This document shows, in pieces, positions 15,364 through 47,659 of a stretch of DNA of 64,000 bases. The stretch is from Oikopleura dioica (lineage: Eukaryota; Animalia; Chordata), in the NCBI GenBank assembly GCA_907165135.1, contig OU015566.1:12028001-12092000 (forward strand), in the 5' to 3' direction. Position numbers and translations under genes: made by a program. Position 1 is the stretch's first letter. Every line of letters starts with the position of its first letter. Under the pieces are notes generated by a model, which worked only from the letters and a program-made list of their open reading frames with translations, was not told the origin of the DNA and searched no databases.

Positions 15364-18300
15364 ATGTCAGACAGTGATTCCAGCATCGAAACAAAACCGC
15401 GAAAGCCTACTTCTTTGAGGCCACAGAACGAAAACGAGCAAGAAGCAGAAGACGAGATTGATGTTGCGGGACTTGTGACGAAGCTCTTATCGGACAGAAA
15501 GAATGCAAATGTTTTGTGTGATCTTCTCAGGAATAGTTCGAAATGCTGACAAAACTGCTGTCATTATCAAATAATTGATCTCTCAAAAGGTTTATCCAAA
15601 CAGATGATCTCGACGAAGAAGAGCTATTCTTTACTGTGGGCGCCATCGAAAAGTGGTTCCTTCAGCAGATAGATGACGGTTTTATGAAAAGCTCGCAAGT
15701 TGAGTCGAAGAAAAAGTATGGAGAATGGATTGCCAAGCAAATCAAAGCATTCATTGGAGTTCTATGCCAAAAAGCATCTATTGAAGACTACTCAGGTATT
15801 GGGATCTTAGATTCGTTAGACTCCCTCGTCCCCTAAGGTCACTTGCTTATCTAGATCGAGCTTTGCTCGGTCGCCGCCGTGTATTTCTCTCCATTCGGTA
15901 ATTCACGCAGTTCGTGAATTAACCTCTATTTTACTCCAGCTCGAAATACAGACGTCAAAGATACTTTACTCGTTTTCTTCACTCGTCCAGATATAGAGAG
16001 CAGGCAAACTACGCTAGAAGTGGGAGATTCAGCAGAAGCTAGGATCCCTTCAGTGGTATCAGAGTAGTCCCGTTGGAGAAAAGATAAATTTTTCCGCCAT
16101 CGACAACCGAAGTTTCGCAACTTGGACGCTGATTGGCCGTCAGCGGAGTCGAGGGGAACCGAATCACCAACCGCCACCGCGCCGCCGGAGAAACTCCACT
16201 CAGAGAATTTTCCGCACCACACCAACACCACCCCGAGCGAGCGCCACCGCACGAGCGCCACCACGACCCACGCGCCGAAAGTCGCGCCCACGCAACCACG
16301 CACGCACGCCGGGGAAAACCTAAAATACTGAGAAAAACATAATTCTTTCGCCACTTTTCACCAAAAATCGAGAGAAGTTTACGAAGAATCGACCCTTGGA
16401 CCAGACCTTGAAATTTCGACAATCGCTGGACAGAGAAATCGTCGGGCGTTTGCGCAAAAGGCACCTCAGCTCATCATATTGCGACTTTTAGTCGCAGTAT
16501 TTTCTGAGGGCCTGAAAGGTAATCCAAGGCCCATAAACCCTTACTGCCGATATATTTCGAGCTATGGCGGCGAACAAATCACTGCTAGAAACCGTCACCG
16601 AAATAAGAAGCATAAACGATCGAGTAAACTACCTCGAAGAACAAGTGCGAAATGACGAATCACTAAAGCCAAGCCTAGAGCCCTTGATCACAGAAAGCAG
16701 AGTAAAATTAGAACAGCTCAGTACAACGCTTCTTACCTGCGAGCTCGATCAAGGAAAAGACTCTACGAATGCGACAATGAGAGAAGAAGCATGGGTGGCC
16801 ACTACCTGGTCTCGTCACGTCCAAGACTTGCCGAAGCTGGACGCCGCATGCAACACATCTTTCAACACCTTCTTGGGCAGAGCCGACATTTATCACCGCG
16901 CCTACGTCCGCGACAGACCTTCACGTGAACAGCCTTTCATCGCAGCAGTGTACAGCCACTTCGACTTGAACATCGAACGCTCACTTGGAACCGAATTTCT
17001 GAATTGTCAAGACTGGAAATCGGCCAAGGCGCTGCTAGAGAAATCATTCGCCGCGAAGAGTCACTACTTACTGAAGCTAAGCGAAGTTTTCGACGTCGAA
17101 TACGACCATTCGAAGCCGTTTGCACACTACACCGCCAACGTCTTGCAAAAGATGAACGAGGCGAAGCAAGCGACTTTGAACTCTTACCGACAAGAGAAGT
17201 CAGCCGACGCCGGGGTCGATGAAATATTTGACATATTCTCGACGATGATGCTGTACTTGAATCTTAGGAAAGAAGAACCAGACGTTTTCAACGCAATCCT
17301 TCCAAGCCTATCAAAAGTTTACGATATCAACGAACTCTGCCGTCTCGCCCAATCCACAAGACAGAATCGAGTTGACAGCGCGACCGTCTCCCAGCACTTC
17401 AACAGAAATAAGAACAAAAGAAGAAGAATGCTAAGCGCGCCAGCAACGATTCTAAGGATGGGAAAGACGATAAACAACCAGAATCCAAGAAGATAAATAC
17501 GACTAAGAACGTTGAAGATTTCCAACCATTCGACGTTCACTTTTACACAGTGAAGAAGAAGCGACCAGGAAAGGCTTATTTCGCTTCGGCTACCATCATT
17601 ACGGGCTCTAAAAGTTTTGACGTATCGATGGAAGTCGACAGCGGAGCCGAGTCCTCCTGTCTGTCCGCTGCTTACGTTCCCGACGAATTTCTCCAGATGC
17701 TGAAGCCCTGTCCCTTCAAGGTCACCGGTTTCAGCCCAAATATTCCCGCCGAGCAGCCGATGGGTATCCTTCCCTGCCGCTTATCATTCAATGGTGGCCC
17801 TGCATTCTCCCTGAATCTCACCATTATGCCAGGCAGTAAATACCCAAGTCTACTGGGCCGCGATATACTAGAGAATGCGATGACGGACAGCTTCACAGTC
17901 GACAATAAGAATCGTACTCTCTCATTTTGCTACAACGAAGCCTTCACACAAACTGAGACTCAAGTGGTGAAGCTGGACGGAGTGAAGCGGACCAAAATCA
18001 AGAAATACTTGACTACTAGATCAGCGGTCAAGGATAGCGATCGATCCCGCACTCAACCGCCACCAAAAGTCCCAAAGCTGGACGCACCTAACAAGAACGC
18101 AGCCAGGTGCCCCATTCAGCTAGCGAAGCAAAAACTCGGAATTACCCTACCAGCAAACGCCGACCCGGGGCAAAAGAAGGTGGTCGCCGAGCTGTGTTTG
18201 GATTTCGACGACAGATTCGGCTGCGACGGTCAAAAAATGGGTGAATTCCCATTCGAGATCGAAATCCCGACTGATGGTACGAGTCGAAACATCAGTCAAC

Positions 18301-21300: not shown

Positions 21301-23663
21301 GATTGGACATGGAAAATCTGGGAGATACAACCGCTACATCTATTTTGGACTCGTCGGTAGCTCCAGCCGAGCCGTCAGATCGCTGGTACTCTGGTGGTAC
21401 TCTTTATGAAACTGCCGAGGACATGTCAGCTGATGCTACAGTGATTTCGGAGGTTGCTGCGCCCGACAATAGCCATATGTCAGTCGATAAACAAAATTCA
21501 ACAGTAGTTGAGGGCTCAGCAACTGAAAACAGCAAGAAAAGAACCCGTCCAAAGTCTTCACCAGATCGTCAATACTCAGCCGGCGCCGATCCGAATGCGA
21601 CTTTAACCGAAGTTGGAGCAGCTCATCTCCCGAAACATACAAAACGAGCACACCGTGAAACGAGGCCCGTCGAACCTCTAAACATCGGCACAAACTCGGG
21701 TCAGTCATACGACTAAGCGCAAGTACTGCCCCACTCAGGTCCCCTATTCATCGACCGGGGCCTGAAAAGGTACGGAAATTATCACAGTTTACCGTCGCCG
21801 ACGTATTTTGAGTTCTTCTACATGTGCAGCTACTCCTTCATGTCATCACCGCTCGGACATCACGAAAACTTCGCATCTGATTCAAGCTTTTTCCCAAAAA
21901 AGGGTTTTTTAACGCGAATCAGACTGCCTCGACGTTTCGAACCTGCCATGTTACTCATCTTACGCTTATACTCCTGCAAAAATCACACACTTTGGCCTTA
22001 GAGGACGTTTCAGTCTCATGGGGGGTATTGGGATCTTAGATTCGTTAGACTCCCTCGTCCCCTAAGGTCACTTGCTTATCTAGATCGAGCTTTGCTCGGT
22101 CGCCGCCGTGTATTTCTCTCCATTCGGTAATTCACGCAGTTCGTGAATTAACCTCTATTTTACTCCAGCTCGAAATACAGACGTCAAAGATACTTTACTC
22201 GTTTTCTTCACTCGTCCAGATATAGAGAGCAGGCAAACTACGCTAGAAGTGGGAGATTCAGCAGAAGCTAGGATCCCTTCACAGGAAAGAGTTAAACATG
22301 ATCACTTTTGAATATACTATTAGAAACTTATTTGTAGAATTTATACAGTATAACTCAGGCGAAAGACATTATGTTCCCTTGTTTAATACGACTGTATAAA
22401 TTGGAGCTGGAAACAAGAACAAAACATATTGAAACAGGAAAAATCATCCGAAAAGTAGCGGTCCATCTGTGCAGCTTTGAAGACGACAGAACCGAAGAGA
22501 TCGAGAAGTTCTCCGAGTACTTTATCCACCCCGATTTTGTCATAGAAGTACTGAGAAAAATGACGGACCTTATGGACAATTACAAAGATAGAAACGATAT
22601 CTTGGCGGGTAATGTGTTGTATTTCCTCCAAGCCATTGCGGACGTGTTTCCAGAAGAAGTCACGCCAGATATGAATATGTCTTCTCGCTCCTCCATCAGT
22701 ACTAAAGTAACTTGTCTTTCAATGCCAAAATTTAACTGATATTCAGTCTCTCAAAACAGCCGTCCAAGCTTTTGTCACTGCCTTTCTTCGACGGCAACTC
22801 ACAGACAATCTGACCAAAAGAATACTTGTCAAAATGAGCGTAATTCTTCCGATGCTCTCGAATCCCCTCTTGATCGCAGACTACATTGTTGCTTGCTACG
22901 ACTCTCCGAACTCGTCGATTGCATTTTTGGCTTTGAGTGGCATCTTTACTCTTGTTAGCAGTAATTTTTAATTTGGGTGATTAGTTATTCACAATTTTCT
23001 AGCGTACAATTTTGAGTATCCAGACTTTTTCCAGAAGGTTTATCGACTTTTATCCGATGATGTTGTCTATGCTGCAAATAGAGTCCAAGTTCTGCATATG
23101 ATAAATATGTTCTTGCAGTCTCCAAAGCTTCCCGTCTCCTATCAGGTCAGCACAATCCGAGTTTCAATATTTTCTAAGGAATCATTAGTATGCCTTCTGT
23201 AAAAGACTCTCGCGACTAGCACTACACGCTCCAGCCCCAGTCGCGATTGGCATCATGCCGGTTATTTACAACCTCATTCGCAGCAGTCAGTCCTTGCGAT
23301 TGCTCATTAATAGACCAACTGCAGCTGAAGTAGAAAAAGATCCTTATGATCACACAGCTGAAAATGTTGAAGATTCAAGAGCGGCAGAAAGCTGTTTGTG
23401 GGAGCTTGAATCGCTGAGAAAGCATTTTGTTCCAGAAGTGAAAAGATTGGCCTCTCGTAAGATAACTCTGTTTCATTATTTCCAAGCAGCATTTTATAGA
23501 AATAACTACCTCACTTGGCCGGGTTAATGACCCAATTCCGACAGACGTAACGTATATGACGATGACGCAAAAGGTACTTGATGGACAGAAGAACGAAGAA
23601 TATCCACTTGCGATTGATAAACCGAAATGTTTGATGGTTGATGAACTGTTTGTTGAAGGCTAA
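15364..23663 (+). CDS. NOC4L: Nucleolar complex protein 4 homolog, interrupted by an LTR retrotransposon
   Basis: KLLSDRKNANVLCDLL, KKKYGEWI, QAKDIMFPCLIRLYKLE, ALSGIFTL, NFEYPDFFQKVY, SPKLPVSY, KRLSRLAL, ESCLWELESLRKHF match NOC4/CBF family motifs; exons lie on both sides of 15797-22281. Confidence 0.9.
15797..16052 (+). repeat. 5' LTR (TA...CA)
   Basis: Direct repeat of 22026-22281; imperfect terminal inverted repeat TATTGGGATC / GATCCCTTCA; internal hairpin AATTCACG-CAGTT-CGTGAATT. Confidence 0.97.
16054..16064 (+). promoter_or_regulatory. Primer-binding site, tRNA-iMet-like (TGGTATCAGAG)
   Basis: Starts 1 nt after the 5' LTR; TGG complementary to the tRNA CCA end. Confidence 0.85.
16564..17496 (+). 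CDS. gag: Retrotransposon Gag-like ORF (310 aa, no CCHC knuckle)
   Basis: First ATG after a leader with no ATG; N-terminal coiled coil; position between PBS and pol. Confidence 0.85.
   Translation: MAANKSLLETVTEIRSINDRVNYLEEQVRNDESLKPSLEPLITESRVKLEQLSTTLLTCELDQGKDSTNATMREEAWVATTWSRHVQDLPKLDAACNTSFNTFLGRADIYHRAYVRDRPSREQPFIAAVYSHFDLNIERSLGTEFLNCQDWKSAKALLEKSFAAKSHYLLKLSEVFDVEYDHSKPFAHYTANVLQKMNEAKQATLNSYRQEKSADAGVDEIFDIFSTMMLYLNLRKEEPDVFNAILPSLSKVYDINELCRLAQSTRQNRVDSATVSQHFNRNKNKRRRMLSAPATILRMGKTINNQNPRR
17412..21716 (+). CDS. pol: Retrotransposon Pol polyprotein (protease, RT, RNase H, integrase, long disordered tail)
   Basis: VDSGA protease; DLRSGYWQ, LPFG and YIDD RT; YTDAS, EKE and TDH RNase H; H-H-C-C zinc finger; IDF, SDRG and AERAN DDE integrase; uninterrupted frame. 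Confidence 0.97.
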   Translation, partial: EQKKKNAKRASNDSKDGKDDKQPESKKINTTKNVEDFQPFDVHFYTVKKKRPGKAYFASATIITGSKSFDVSMEVDSGAESSCLSAAYVPDEFLQMLKPCPFKVTGFSPNIPAEQPMGILPCRLSFNGGPAFSLNLTIMPGSKYPSLLGRDILENAMTDSFTVDNKNRTLSFCYNEAFTQTETQVVKLDGVKRTKIKKYLTTRSAVKDSDRSRTQPPPKVPKLDAPNKNAARCPIQLAKQKLGITLPANADPGQKKVVAELCLDFDDRFGCDGQKMGEFPFEIEIPTDGTSRNISQHPIPQAFHGQVTDHISELLDTKIIEEIKDQKGFNSPVLPIPKKSGEMRFCINYKNSLNKCLSDKSDPYHLPSMEDTIANIGPGNKYFATVDLRSGYWQCPIKKSDRYKTSFQWGGKSYAFCRLPFGYRCSGNIFSRVVNTILDSSPTRKKMLSYIDDIVCFGKSFSCYYNTLRNLFIALRKFNAKLKGEKCSFLQSEAHFLGRIINEEGIKPDPAQVSALRQMKPPRSQKELASLIGSLNWIRGFLETKMGEAISSGCFSSRMKPINDVRNSANETNCFKWTKEADLALKEIQRRLSETPVISFPNFDESFHLYTDASLYAAGGVLLQEYGGRVHLVSAISHTFNKAERKWNTSEKEMFSIVWCCERLEKLLKGRFFQIHTDHRSLIFLHKKKFKNSKISRWQSRLEEFDFHIVYIKGSENQFADFMSRRPGEDDKSLGYDSEFPVGREYEIDKNSPVRVFVPFWNENQFPEKITLSEVKIHKVNVKAIAAPMEIPLVSANYNNILDYQREDSALSAIITFLESGKEPLDIKSLVKDSDHRQSSLLKMEKALFLDNTTGCLMCQFKSGARAVVPEAVKSHFLFLAHDLSGHLGEPRTLERLEDVWWPSFQDDVSNYVHSCVPCLRRKGSAGTRTKPPLGTLRRGKTAGESIQIDFACMPPAGGFKYYLVVADTFSRYTWCIPTRSDTAICAAKALIYKVFLPMDFLPKHLHSDRGTHFCASVIDEMCKLNQIKHTISTAFHPQSNAFAERANRTIKNSLFCMVNSSSGRKTWADCVPHVMRALNSVKNKSTKISPREVWFGRKSTFTHSTGAEMTAETPQVFGLNVGALAKSAEAIVKTAMEAADRAMEHRLKNEPKPRPIPAGAVVYIKRENLTDAKSKKERWVGPLKAVSSNDWVVMVEDKKGQRDFIHREHVVHAAERNHDLRWIDYYEAEYVFPHLTEIVKSKVPQKSPVPTSKPMEKSGSKSHGGRKSSQVASTPMVAMEKPPRSSLSPILESRRRLDMENLGDTTATSILDSSVAPAEPSDRWYSGGTLYETAEDMSADATVISEVAAPDNSHMSVDKQNSTVVEGSATENSKKRTRPKSSPDRQYSAGADPNATLTEVGAAHLPKHTKRAHRETRPVEPLNIGTNSGQSYD
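17460..17466 (+). promoter_or_regulatory. -1 ribosomal frameshift slippery heptamer G GGA AAG
   Basis: X XXY YYZ pattern phased to gag codons (GGA 17461, AAG 17464) inside the gag/pol overlap; pol frame (-1) is open from 17412. Confidence 0.65.
22020..22025 (+). promoter_or_regulatory. Short polypurine tract (G6)
   Basis: GGGGGG directly abutting the 3' LTR. Confidence 0.6.
22026..22281 (+). repeat. 3' LTR
   Basis: Identical by eye to 15797-16052; followed by TSD CAGG. Confidence 0.97.
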
Positions 23664-43092: not shown

Positions 43093-46000
43093 ATGAAATC
43101 TGACGAGGACGAGTTGACGGAAGATGAGCTCGAGCAGAGTGCAGATTGGGACTCGCGAAATTTCGGCGACGAGGAATTTCTCCCCAATGGTGGCAGATTC
43201 CAGGTTAATCACAATTCTTTCATGACTTTCATCTCGAGCCTTCGCAGCTTGAAGCTTCGCTTATTTTGTCGAGTCGATTGGATTAATTCTAGTTCATTAA
43301 TTTCAAACTCGTGCTGATAATTTAGCAGACAATTATTTATGATGCCAATAACCGCAAATGCCCAGAAAAAGTACCCTTTTGGACGCTGTTTTTGGACTCA
43401 AAAATAGACTCCTGTTTACGTTACAATAATTCTTATTTCTTATCGAATAAAATATTTATAGAATAATTGAATGTTTCTTTAGCTCTTGCAAAAGATCATC
43501 CGCAACTATCAGAAGAAGATCACTGATAGTCCGCGGCCGGATCCAGAATGGCTTCTCAGACTCGGCCACTTTCATCTCCTCGGTCTGCAGTGGCACTTGG
43601 CCCTGTCAGCCTACTCAAAATGTCTCAAATTGTCCAAATGGGAGGATCATCAGTTCTCCGTCATTAGGGATCAAAGGTTAGCTCCTCATTTTCAAAATGA
43701 CCTTGGACAAAGCAACTGTAATTACCCTTCTCTTCAGTCGTTTCGTCGTGAGGCCGAACAAGGGCGCAAAAAGTGGACGAGTTATGCTGTTATACGGACT
43801 CGGTCTTTGCTACTTTCACTTCTCGAATTTCGCTTGGGCGAAAAACGCGTTCCTGGAAGTTCTTTACCGCGAGCCAGAGTTTCACTGCGCGCAAGAAGTT
43901 CATGCTCGACTGGGAATTTCGTTGAAATACATGAAACTCTACAACTGGGCTTTCAAAGTAGACCTCAGTGTTGAAAACTCCCATGTAACCTTTGTTTAGC
44001 ATCTACAATGGGCCCTATCCGTCGCGAATCGAAGCCCAGATAGATGTCCAATGTCCGTGGCTGAAATCAAGTTTCATCTCGGCCACACTGAAGAATTAAG
44101 AATGAACTTCCACTCGGCAAAAAGTTATTATGAATCTGTAATCGACGACGATTCCAAGTCGAAATCTGTCGAAGCTGCGGCAAATTCGACACTTGGTTGG
44201 ATGCTCTTTCGCACCAAAGAGCTAGGAGAAAAGGTCAGTTCGTCATCCCTCATTTAAAGTTGATATTCCGACTTGCTGACATTCCTTTTCTAGTCACAAA
44301 GAATCCAGGCTGCAATAAAGCTTCTTCAACGAGCAACCCAGCTCGATGACAATTCCGGTCAAACTTGGTATTATCTTGGACGATGCTACTCAGCCGCTAG
44401 CGATGTAAACTCGGCTTTTAACAACTACAGAAAATCGATTGATAAGTCCGAAGCCTGTGCTGATACTTGGTGCTCCATCGGAGTTCTGTACCAGGAACAG
44501 ACACAACATACTGACGCGCTACAGGTGATTTGCTGCCGAAATTCTTCGATTAAAAATTGTAGGCATTTATCTGCGCTGTTCAACTCGATCCGACCCATGT
44601 TGAAGCATGGATGGATCTTGGAGTCCTGTACGAGTCGAAGAGACAATTCAAAGACGCATTCAAGTGCTTTCATCGTGCTTATTCTTGCTCTGTACGACGC
44701 GGAGCACCGAGAGAAGAGCTTTTTCATAAAGCGAAATCACTTCAAGGTATTTTTAAACCAATAAACCAGCGTAAACGAATGATCATCAAGATATGGAATC
44801 GAATTCTGTTGGACCCCAGACTGGCCTGACTTCCATCGAAAAAGCGTGGACCATGCCTATCCCAGCAGAGCTAACCCAGAGACAAGCTGCCCGATGCGCC
44901 CCACCCCGAAACTTCAATGAAACGCCATCTGAGGAGAAGCCAAAGACCGAAGCTGATAGTAAGAAACAAGTCAAATCAGAACCCGTCGACCAAAATGCAA
45001 CGCCCATGGATTACTCATCATCAACAACTCCCGAGAAAACATCATCATCAACGAAAACTGCGCCTACCAAGCCATCTTCAGCCAAAACTGACAAACAATC
45101 GAGTTCTTCCAATAATAGCGGGCCGAATTGGCTCATGAACGAGATGGAGTCAAACGTCCTGAGAACACTTCAAAATAATTCAAACGCGCTTACGCCCTTC
45201 CAAAAAGCCGAGCTCGAGAGGCTTCGCTATTTACAAAAATGTACAGAATACTTCAAAAAACATGTAAAAACAACCGAAAGCAATGTTCCAACAAATGACT
45301 TGTTCCAACAGACGAACGAGCAAACAAAACCTGCGAAAGAAACCGACTACGCCAAGGAGCTCTCCGTCGTTAAGGGGAGAAGGGTTCCGGGACTTTCTGC
45401 GCCCACTGAGTTCAGCCATTCGATCACTGCCAATGAATTGATCAAGTAAGAAACTCACCTTCGATTTATTTTAAAACGATCATTTAGTGTTTGTCGAAAA
45501 CTTCGCCACAACTTAGAAAAGGATACTAAACTTGAAATCGAAAATCGTTCTCCCCCCTTCTTCCCACTCAACCCGAAGCCCGTTGATATCAATCCGGAAG
45601 CACCCCTGATCCAAGTTGACACGAAAAAAGAAGCCAACTCTAAAGTCCTTAGACAGTTTTTTTTTTAAGGGGGCCCGGAGAACTTTTTGAAAAAAAGAAT
45701 CTTCCCATGATCGTAGAGGGATGAATGAGGGCTTGACTGAAAGAGCAGCCCGAGTTCTGTTTAAAAAAAATTCAGCGAAGATTTTGATAGAGTAGTTTCG
45801 CTGTAAATGCCTGTTGAAAATGCACTAAATAACAATAGATTTGGAAATGCGGCGCGCTGATTGGCTGAGGCGCTGCTATTGTTGAAAAATGGGCGCCGTG
45901 GCGGCGCGCAAGGACCGACTCGCTGACAGAAAACCGGCTGATACAGCACTCCTGCTGATCCAATTTTTTCGTCGAATTTTTTTTAAACAGTTCGATAAAT

Positions 46001-47659
46001 GGGCTTTCAGATGAGCCTTTATTTATCTCCGTACGATGTCGGGAAGTACCTTTTTTTTAAAAAGTTCTCCGGGCCCCCTTAAAAAAAAAACTGTCTTAGT
46101 GATATTTGCACATCGTCAAAAGTGCCTGTCGTTTTAATACGTGGGATTGCGGCGGCCTTGAAAATGGATTTGGGCTTTTTCTCAACGAAAATGTTGAGTA
46201 CGCATCATAGTCAACAAAAAATTATTCAACGGTAAGACGCATTGGCCCTCGATTCACAATCTTATTTCTTGTTTAGCGAGCAGAGTAAAGTACCCGGAGA
46301 GAAATGGTCCCTCAACGAAAAAGTCACTACCTCCACAATAAAAGAATATGGCATCTATCAAGGAAAAAATTTCCGCGAAGCATTGACCGACGATTCAAAA
46401 CGCTCAGACAAGAAGAAATCCAAAAACGTTCGTCCGCGCGCGCCCGTGCGCATGGCCGAAGTCAATGACCTAACAGTTCCTGAACAAAACTATCGAGAGC
46501 ACCTGACCGAGCTACACAAGCTGCCGCCTTTCATGCGAATCTGTAGCGCGCAAAACATTCTGACGTATTGCGGCCAGCAACACACAAAAGCCCAGTTGCT
46601 CCTTACCGTGCCTACGTGTCGAGTTCCGCCGCGGCATTCCGTCTTTGCCAAAGTGTCGTTAAATGTTGGACCAGGAGATTATGAGTGGTTTATAGGTGAG
46701 AGAAAATCGCCGGATGTCGTCGATGTTTTTATAACACTTGCTTATTTAGTGCCCGAATGGTGGCATGTTGAATTCCGCGAATTGCTGTGTCAGCAAGGCA
46801 AGACATTTTCCGACAGCTGGTGGCCGGATCTCGAAGCTTGCGCTAAACATTCCATACCTATTTATAGATTTATACAGGTTTGCTTTCAAAACAATTGCCG
46901 GGGAGCTTCAATTCAACTTCCATTTTCAGAAACCTGGAGATTTAGTTTGGGTCCAATCAGGGTCAATTTATTGGGCTCAGTCTCTCGGATGGTGTAATAA
47001 TATTATGGTAGGAATCGTCTTGATTTCGGTTATTTAAAGATCTCTTCAGTACAACGTTGGTCCACTCACTGCCTACCAGTACCAGATAGCAATCCAAATA
47101 TATGAAAAGTCCCTGATGAACTCAAGTTTACCTTCATGTAAGCATTTCAGAACTTACCCGATTTCTCATGAACCGTTTTAGGCCCTATGTTCCACATAAC
47201 CTGGAGTCTGGCCCGACTGGTTCGCGTTTCAGACTTCAGGATGTACTCACAAATCAAGGTAAATCTCTCGTCTACTGTCGCTCACGCTAATCTTGTCTAT
47301 TAGTTTTTCCTACAACGCTCACTCTGGGCACTTTCGTCACAAGAAGAATTTTTGAAAAATCTCAAAATCGATGTAGTTCCACATAGAAGTAGTAAAGTTG
47401 CCTTTTGCTTTGACTGTCGTCGCGAATTATTTCTATTCATTTGGGTTCATCGGAAGTCGGATACTGACTCGAATCAGAGACAAGCTTTTTGCCAGGTAAA
47501 ATAGCCGGATAAAGCCGAAATCTAATTGCTTTCAAGACTTGTGCCTTGCGTAGCGATCGGGAAGAAGGAAACTGGTGCGTTTTGCGCCAGGCCAGTCTTG
47601 ACGAGCTCCATTCAACTTTCAACAAATTCAACTTTCACAAAACCCCACAAAAAATATAG
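43093..47659 (+). CDS. KDM6A: KDM6/UTX-like protein (TPR repeats, JmjC, Zn domain), predicted catalytically inactive
   Basis: TPRs ([45 protein letters not shown]), [73 protein letters not shown]...FCQTC. Confidence 0.9.
45652..46095. mobile_element. PIF/Harbinger-type MITE (444 bp) inserted in a KDM6-like coding exon
   Basis: 37-bp perfect TIR (GACAG-T10-AAGGGGGCCCGGAGAACTTTTT) decaying over ~130 bp; 3-bp TSD TTA (45649-45651 / 46096-46098); removal restores ...NSKVLSDICT... Confidence 0.92.

Follow-up and report, generated by a model that had tools for sequence, protein, structure and literature searches.

A polymorphic miniature inverted-repeat element in a KDM6/UTX-like coding exon of Oikopleura dioica and the possible fates of its transcript

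We analyzed a 64,000-nucleotide stretch of the genome of the larvacean Oikopleura dioica (contig OU015566.1, positions 12,028,001 to 12,092,000 of the forward strand; hereafter the window, in whose numbering all positions are given). Within it, a coding exon of a KDM6/UTX-like gene is interrupted by a miniature inverted-repeat transposable element (MITE). The insertion is polymorphic: the assembled haplotype carries it, whereas other DNA, both from the same lineage and from a related one, lacks it. We favor, with a probability of about 0.62, the reading that the insertion allele is rare, perhaps heterozygous, and that most of its transcripts keep the MITE and end early. The original prediction had instead emphasized that the ends of the element create a canonical, in-frame GT-AG intron. 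A polymorphic transposon, a constrained exon and a usable in-frame GT-AG pair together provide a direct test of intron origin. If carriers splice the MITE, the locus would show the birth of an intron that is still segregating; otherwise, it would hold an ordinary deleterious insertion allele.

The element, its host exon and the empty sites

The MITE body occupies positions 45652 to 46095 (444 nt, no strand assigned), is noncoding and is palindromic over nearly its full length. A repeat search identified a perfect 32-nt terminal inverted repeat (TIR), GACAG-T10-AAGGGGGCCCGGAGAAC, at 45652 to 45683 on the forward strand, and its exact reverse complement at 46064 to 46095 on the reverse strand. 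The inverted arms extend over 45648 to 45743 and 46004 to 46099 (96 nt each); they are 82% complementary as a whole and perfect in the outer 32 nt. Exactly two occurrences of a 23-mer from the TIR, one per end, were found in the window, compared to none in 100 shuffles. The element is flanked by a direct repeat of CTTAG at 45648 to 45652 and 46095 to 46099. Within these repeats lie the two copies of the TTA target site duplication (TSD), at 45649 to 45651 and 46096 to 46098 (no strand assigned), one of which is left in empty sites. The duplication is either TTA, with a TIR that ends in G...C, or a longer one of up to 5 nt; the single copy is compatible with both. Because the TIRs are perfect and the duplication is intact, the insertion is probably recent. 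All open reading frames (ORFs) in the MITE are short (63 amino acids at most), and an exact-product lookup of four of them returned no matching product on record. BLAST of the element against the whole window revealed no further copy. As RNA, the MITE is predicted to form one long hairpin, with a minimum free energy of -220.6 kcal/mol, compared to -127 ± 6 kcal/mol for shuffled sequences (z -15.8).

The insertion breaks the codons for V-L-S-D. In this respect the original prediction was borne out: the TIRs, the CTTAG repeats and the matches to UTY and UTX all agree with a MITE that carries a TTA duplication in these codons of a KDM6-like gene. The interrupted exon spans 45488 to 46231 on the forward strand, with coding parts at 45488 to 45652 and 46100 to 46231. 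Upstream, it is flanked by a putative 42-nt GT-AG intron (45446 to 45487), recognized from the sequence and the reading frame. The downstream 45-nt intron (46232 to 46276) is confirmed, as it is spliced out in a transcript contig described below. The 43-amino-acid piece encoded after the MITE (46101 to 46229) aligns to the start of the catalytic core in the solved structures of UTY, UTX and JMJD3 (E value of 4e-7), and the next exon (46278 to 46880) matches the solved UTY and UTX structures with an E value of 3e-18. Searched against a representative protein library, this next exon, which encodes the JmjC domain, matched 82 proteins at E values of 1e-10 or lower; close relatives were present in that library only as fragments (88 to 91% identity, 62 to 184 amino acids), with no full-length Oikopleura model. 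Judged by these homologies, the host of the MITE is a real coding exon of a KDM6 (UTX/UTY/JMJD3)-like JmjC gene. In a HMMER alignment covering window positions 46560 to 47000, the HxE iron-binding motif was absent: GHqeN of UTY aligns to PR--H, followed by S-V-F. The KDM6 homologue may therefore be catalytically inactive.

To estimate the constraint on the exon, we used a 1,272-nt ENA metagenome contig (L001). This contig is continuous across the insertion site, shows about 80% identity to the window on both sides of the MITE and encodes P0001, the best match to the JmjC exon in the representative library (88% identity). Over the 98 codons compared for the interrupted exon, 90 residues and 247 of the 294 bases are identical. 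The synonymous divergence (dS) is about 1.0 and the nonsynonymous divergence (dN) is 0.052, which gives a dN/dS ratio of 0.05. With L001 continuous across the site and this pattern of substitution, the uninterrupted exon is ancestral and under strong purifying selection, despite the failure of the HxE ligands to align in the next exon. Since the dN/dS ratio is 0.05 at a dS of about 1, the interruption should be costly. A protein search with the 126-amino-acid exon ORF of L001 returned no match. The orthologous exons of L001 share about 80% identity in DNA but 88 to 92% in protein, and, on this divergence, L001 points to a deeply diverged sibling lineage among environmental sequences.

The original prediction had set the comparison with an empty site as a check beforehand. 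Besides L001, the site is empty in DNA contigs filed under a second organism label (X27) and in an mRNA contig from an oligo-dT plankton metatranscriptome (X1), a wild sample with many genotypes. In X27, an 825-nt contig (depth of 87) covers 45150 to 45649, continues with one C and resumes at 46098 to 46343. The resulting empty site reads GTC CTC AGT GAT, and the flanks are near-identical to the window. In X1, a 208-nt contig (depth of 2) joins 45604 to 45647, 46095 to 46230 and 46276 to 46303. It derives from mRNA, as the 45-nt intron has been removed. It carries the exact empty site GTC CTT AGT GAT, encodes V-L-S-D and is the sole transcript evidence that crosses the site. Since empty-site DNA exists, this contig is most simply explained as mRNA of the uninterrupted allele.

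We considered whether the MITE is a misassembled repeat, wrongly placed at the KDM6 exon. The placement of repeats can go wrong in long-read assemblies, and the family is multicopy in X27, a genome without a copy at the KDM6 site: 127 contig pieces of X27 fall on the whole stretch, mostly on the MITE, and their summed depth over the MITE is 200 to 800, compared to 87 on the unique flanks. This corresponds to roughly 3 to 9 copy-equivalents, so that the family is multicopy but not large in the X27 genome. However, the duplication is clean, and the empty form of the site keeps exactly one copy of it. Moreover, 0.98 of the 31-mers spanning the two junctions are present in contigs of the probable source sample, although this value and the assembly are not independent. 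An assembly artefact is thus the least credible of the explanations and, in our view, extremely improbable. The share of 0.98 was reached in the probable source sample only. In six other DNA samples it was 0.49 to 0.82, which by our estimate fits empty sites plus words common to other copies of the MITE family.

Retention or removal of the element in the carrier transcript

According to the reading that we favor, a young nonautonomous DNA transposon has inserted into a constrained KDM6/UTX-like exon, and the assembled haplotype carries this insertion. A carrier transcript that keeps the MITE would be translated as KVLRQFFF and then meet a premature TAA at 45666 to 45668 (forward strand). Translation into the MITE would thus end after five codons, with the entire JmjC domain still to come. 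Because the stop lies five codons in and everything from the JmjC domain on would be lost, the carrier allele would be null or strongly hypomorphic, and it would be tolerated through rarity or heterozygosity. The in-frame GT-AG pair would be a by-product of the TIR landing at TTA|G, and it may rescue a fraction of the transcripts.

Alternatively, the carrier allele could be spliced as an introner-like nascent intron. The candidate donor is the GT at 45656 to 45657 in the left TIR (ACA|GTTTTTTT), and the candidate acceptor is the AG at 46098 to 46099, made up of the A of the right TSD and a G of the exon (CTGTCTTAG|T); both are on the forward strand. Splicing of 45656 to 46099 would take out 444 nt in frame and give V-L-R-H-D-I-C, with S replaced by R-H. 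In an enumeration of donors at 45560 to 45760 against acceptors at 45990 to 46180, this was the sole GT-AG pair that removes the MITE in frame without a stop. The enumeration also took other donors starting with G over the same ranges. It yielded six further in-frame, stop-free combinations against AG acceptors, all of them noncanonical and with 9 to 26 residues deleted. A GA-AG removal of 45652 to 46099 was examined as a rescue and rejected, as it takes out 448 nt and shifts the frame.

The original prediction had also proposed a one-codon scar wherever this TIR lands at a TTA with a G next to it. This holds as a matter of arithmetic: four TIR bases are kept and one flanking base is lost, a net gain of 3 nt. 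Since this outcome follows automatically from the TIR geometry at TTA|G, a single in-frame case is unsurprising by chance. The scar would fall just ahead of the conserved FCTNP...VIRG block, where the exon shows weak conservation relative to UTY and UTX, a point in favor of this splice.

The strength of the two sites was scored with position weight matrices built from short introns that were predicted from ORF junctions in the window; these sets contain false introns, and the percentiles that follow are rough. Among 37 introns picked on the acceptor alone, the donors show A (56%) or T (29%) at position +3, A at +4 (54%) and G at -1 (45%). The donor ACA|GTTTTT has neither the preferred G at -1 nor A at +3 and +4. 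It scores 3.2 bits, at about the 16th percentile of the 37-intron set and the 68th of all 2,991 GTs in the window. The acceptor scores 5.0 bits, at about the 24th percentile of 33 introns picked on the donor alone and the 92nd of all AGs in the window. On these scores the acceptor appears plausible, while the donor seems little better than an average GT. The proposed canonical in-frame intron is accordingly upheld in its frame, its 444-nt length and its predicted product; "canonical" applies to the dinucleotides only, and the donor is weak.

Other features also argue against this splice. In the predicted fold, the donor pairs with the acceptor at the foot of an uninterrupted stem of about 47 bp; the binding of U1 and U2AF would first require this long perfect duplex to open. 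In length, the candidate intron exceeds the local introns (42 to 45 nt) about 10-fold. The word depth in X27 sums to only the few copy-equivalents given above. The predicted junction 45655|46100 (AGACA|TGAT) did not turn up in any run, X1 and the two raw RNA-seq runs described below included; X1 is the only RNA sample to cross the site, and its depth of 2 gives very low power. Taken together, the weak donor, the position of both sites in a long perfect stem and the small family in X27 lean against efficient splicing, and we regard splicing of the carrier allele at 45656 and 46099 as unlikely.

Two raw RNA-seq runs under the species label (X7 and X8) match the window only on 45150 to 45300, at 90 to 95%, and have no reads at the interrupted exon. 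They carry fixed differences from the window at 12 positions within 45150 to 45300, and they diverge completely after about 45270. These runs represent a divergent lineage and are uninformative for the MITE site; the species label evidently covers deeply diverged lineages, and RNA filed under it need not be usable with this assembly. A protein search with the 43-amino-acid downstream piece, which could have revealed VLRHDIC, returned no candidates.

Several points weigh against retention of the MITE as the usual outcome. Donors are weakly conserved in this genome, and both the candidate donor and the candidate acceptor fall within the lower range of the putative real sites. The spliceosome of Oikopleura has, in addition, been described as permissive (PMC4122922), which together with the degenerate local donors speaks for the GT-AG splice.

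A further route to an intact message would be exact removal of the MITE and one copy of the duplication by noncanonical splicing, assisted by pairing of the TIRs, with the X1 contig as the product. Such a removal would be akin to that of the MITE-derived introns of Fritillaria or the nonconventional introns of Euglena. Six cuts could achieve it, from CT..GT through AC..AG. The X1 contig matches the flanks in the window at 100% identity and skips exactly 447 nt, as this route would require, and TIR pairing draws the two ends together. Noncanonical introns are, moreover, handled by larvacean spliceosomes (PMC11282704, PMC4122922). However, the noncanonical class of Oikopleura is reported to be GA-AG (PMC4122922), and no exact cut of the six combines an initial G with a terminal AG. 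In addition, X1 is wild plankton with many genotypes, and exact removal is unnecessary when empty-site DNA accounts for the X1 contig more simply. We therefore consider this route very improbable, well behind splicing at the GT-AG pair.

Relation to Harbinger elements

The MITE is plausibly, although this is unproven, a nonautonomous cut-and-paste DNA transposon of the Tourist/Harbinger-like type. The assignment to PIF/Harbinger is made because of the TTA duplication (PMC2213677). Tourist/mPing-type PIF/Harbinger MITEs share with this element TIRs, small size and the lack of coding sequence, and are marked by a 3-nt TTA/TAA duplication (PMC2213677). In the window, the corresponding features are perfect TIRs of 32 nt, a length of 444 nt and noncoding content. 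The TTA is doubled as expected, yet so is the whole CTTAG, in the one copy available, so that a 5-nt duplication is also possible. The elements of Medicago use a G(N)5GTT motif, which the TIR of the Oikopleura MITE lacks. Neither an autonomous partner with the same ends, which would encode a DDE transposase and a Myb-like ORF, nor a transposase was found in the 64-kb window and two metagenome scans. The target favored by maize PIF is an extended palindrome around CTTAG, a preference that we did not use as evidence.

Tourist-type elements are capable of precise excision that restores the target (PMC4561436). By analogy, precise excision at the DNA level can be another source of empty alleles that bear TTA.

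The two metagenome scans were performed on JGI data. With the exact TIR 21-mer, no matches were obtained. A gapped-pattern TIR scan returned seven loci with a single match each, and BLAST similarity of 15 to 27 nt; these were discarded as chance matches. X1 also contains a 170-nt contig that matches the MITE interior (45841 to 46010) with 100% identity. Some copy of the MITE family, from the KDM6 locus or another, is thus present in poly(A)-primed RNA.

Comparison with known intron-generating elements

About three-quarters of Oikopleura introns occupy positions that no other animal shares, and their origin is unsettled (PMC4122922). In O. dioica, the median intron reportedly measures 49 bp, 11% of introns are noncanonical and heterozygosity is about 3.6% (PMC8008620). 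The window's introns of 42 to 45 nt and the plankton samples in which its sequence occurs likewise point to Oikopleura. If the insertion were a newborn spliceosomal intron segregating in a chordate, removed either at GT 45656 and AG 46099 or exactly, and one of many such MITEs in Oikopleura, it would represent a live mechanism for this very high share of lineage-specific introns. We hold this broader proposal to be doubtful.

Among known systems, introners come closest: in the mechanism summarized in PMC11282704, one splice site comes with the element and the other from the duplication. Introners are known from Micromonas, Aureococcus and other lineages (Huff et al. 2016 and Gozashti et al. 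2022, as summarized in PMC11282704). At the level of its sequence, the KDM6 MITE has this layout of sites: GT at positions 5 and 6 of the TIR, and AG formed by the A of the TSD and the flanking G. In the same summary, introners are likewise short nonautonomous TIR-bearing DNA transposons, and they produce a 3-nt duplication (PMC11282704). The KDM6 MITE differs in that its 32-nt perfect TIRs and full-length hairpin would bury both sites, and its removal would leave a 3-nt scar and not be exact. Furthermore, introners are found as many near-identical copies that are spliced as introns in unrelated genes, whereas a single copy of the KDM6 MITE family was read in its genomic setting.

The original prediction had stated that MITE-derived introns are known in lineages including appendicularians. 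Work on Fritillaria sustains this statement; in Gozashti et al. 2022, the main text makes no reference to tunicates. In Fritillaria borealis, MITE-derived introns are mostly AG-AC or AG-AT, are fixed and are served by a modified spliceosome (Henriet et al. 2019, as reported in PMC11282704 and PMC13326754). To the extent that these reports describe them, they resemble the KDM6 insertion in the larvacean host, the TIR-bearing element and the species-specific position in coding sequence. In contrast to the AG-AC and AG-AT introns of Fritillaria, the local introns here are ordinary GT-AG introns of 42 to 45 nt, and the KDM6 insertion is polymorphic. Membership of the KDM6 MITE in either the introners or the Fritillaria-type introns cannot be claimed from these sequence comparisons.

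Elsewhere in the window, identical strings recur 6,229 nt apart: 15815 to 15860 equals 22044 to 22089, and 15985 to 16032 equals 22214 to 22261. These matches suggest a duplicated segment within the window, at 15815 to 16032 and 22044 to 22261.

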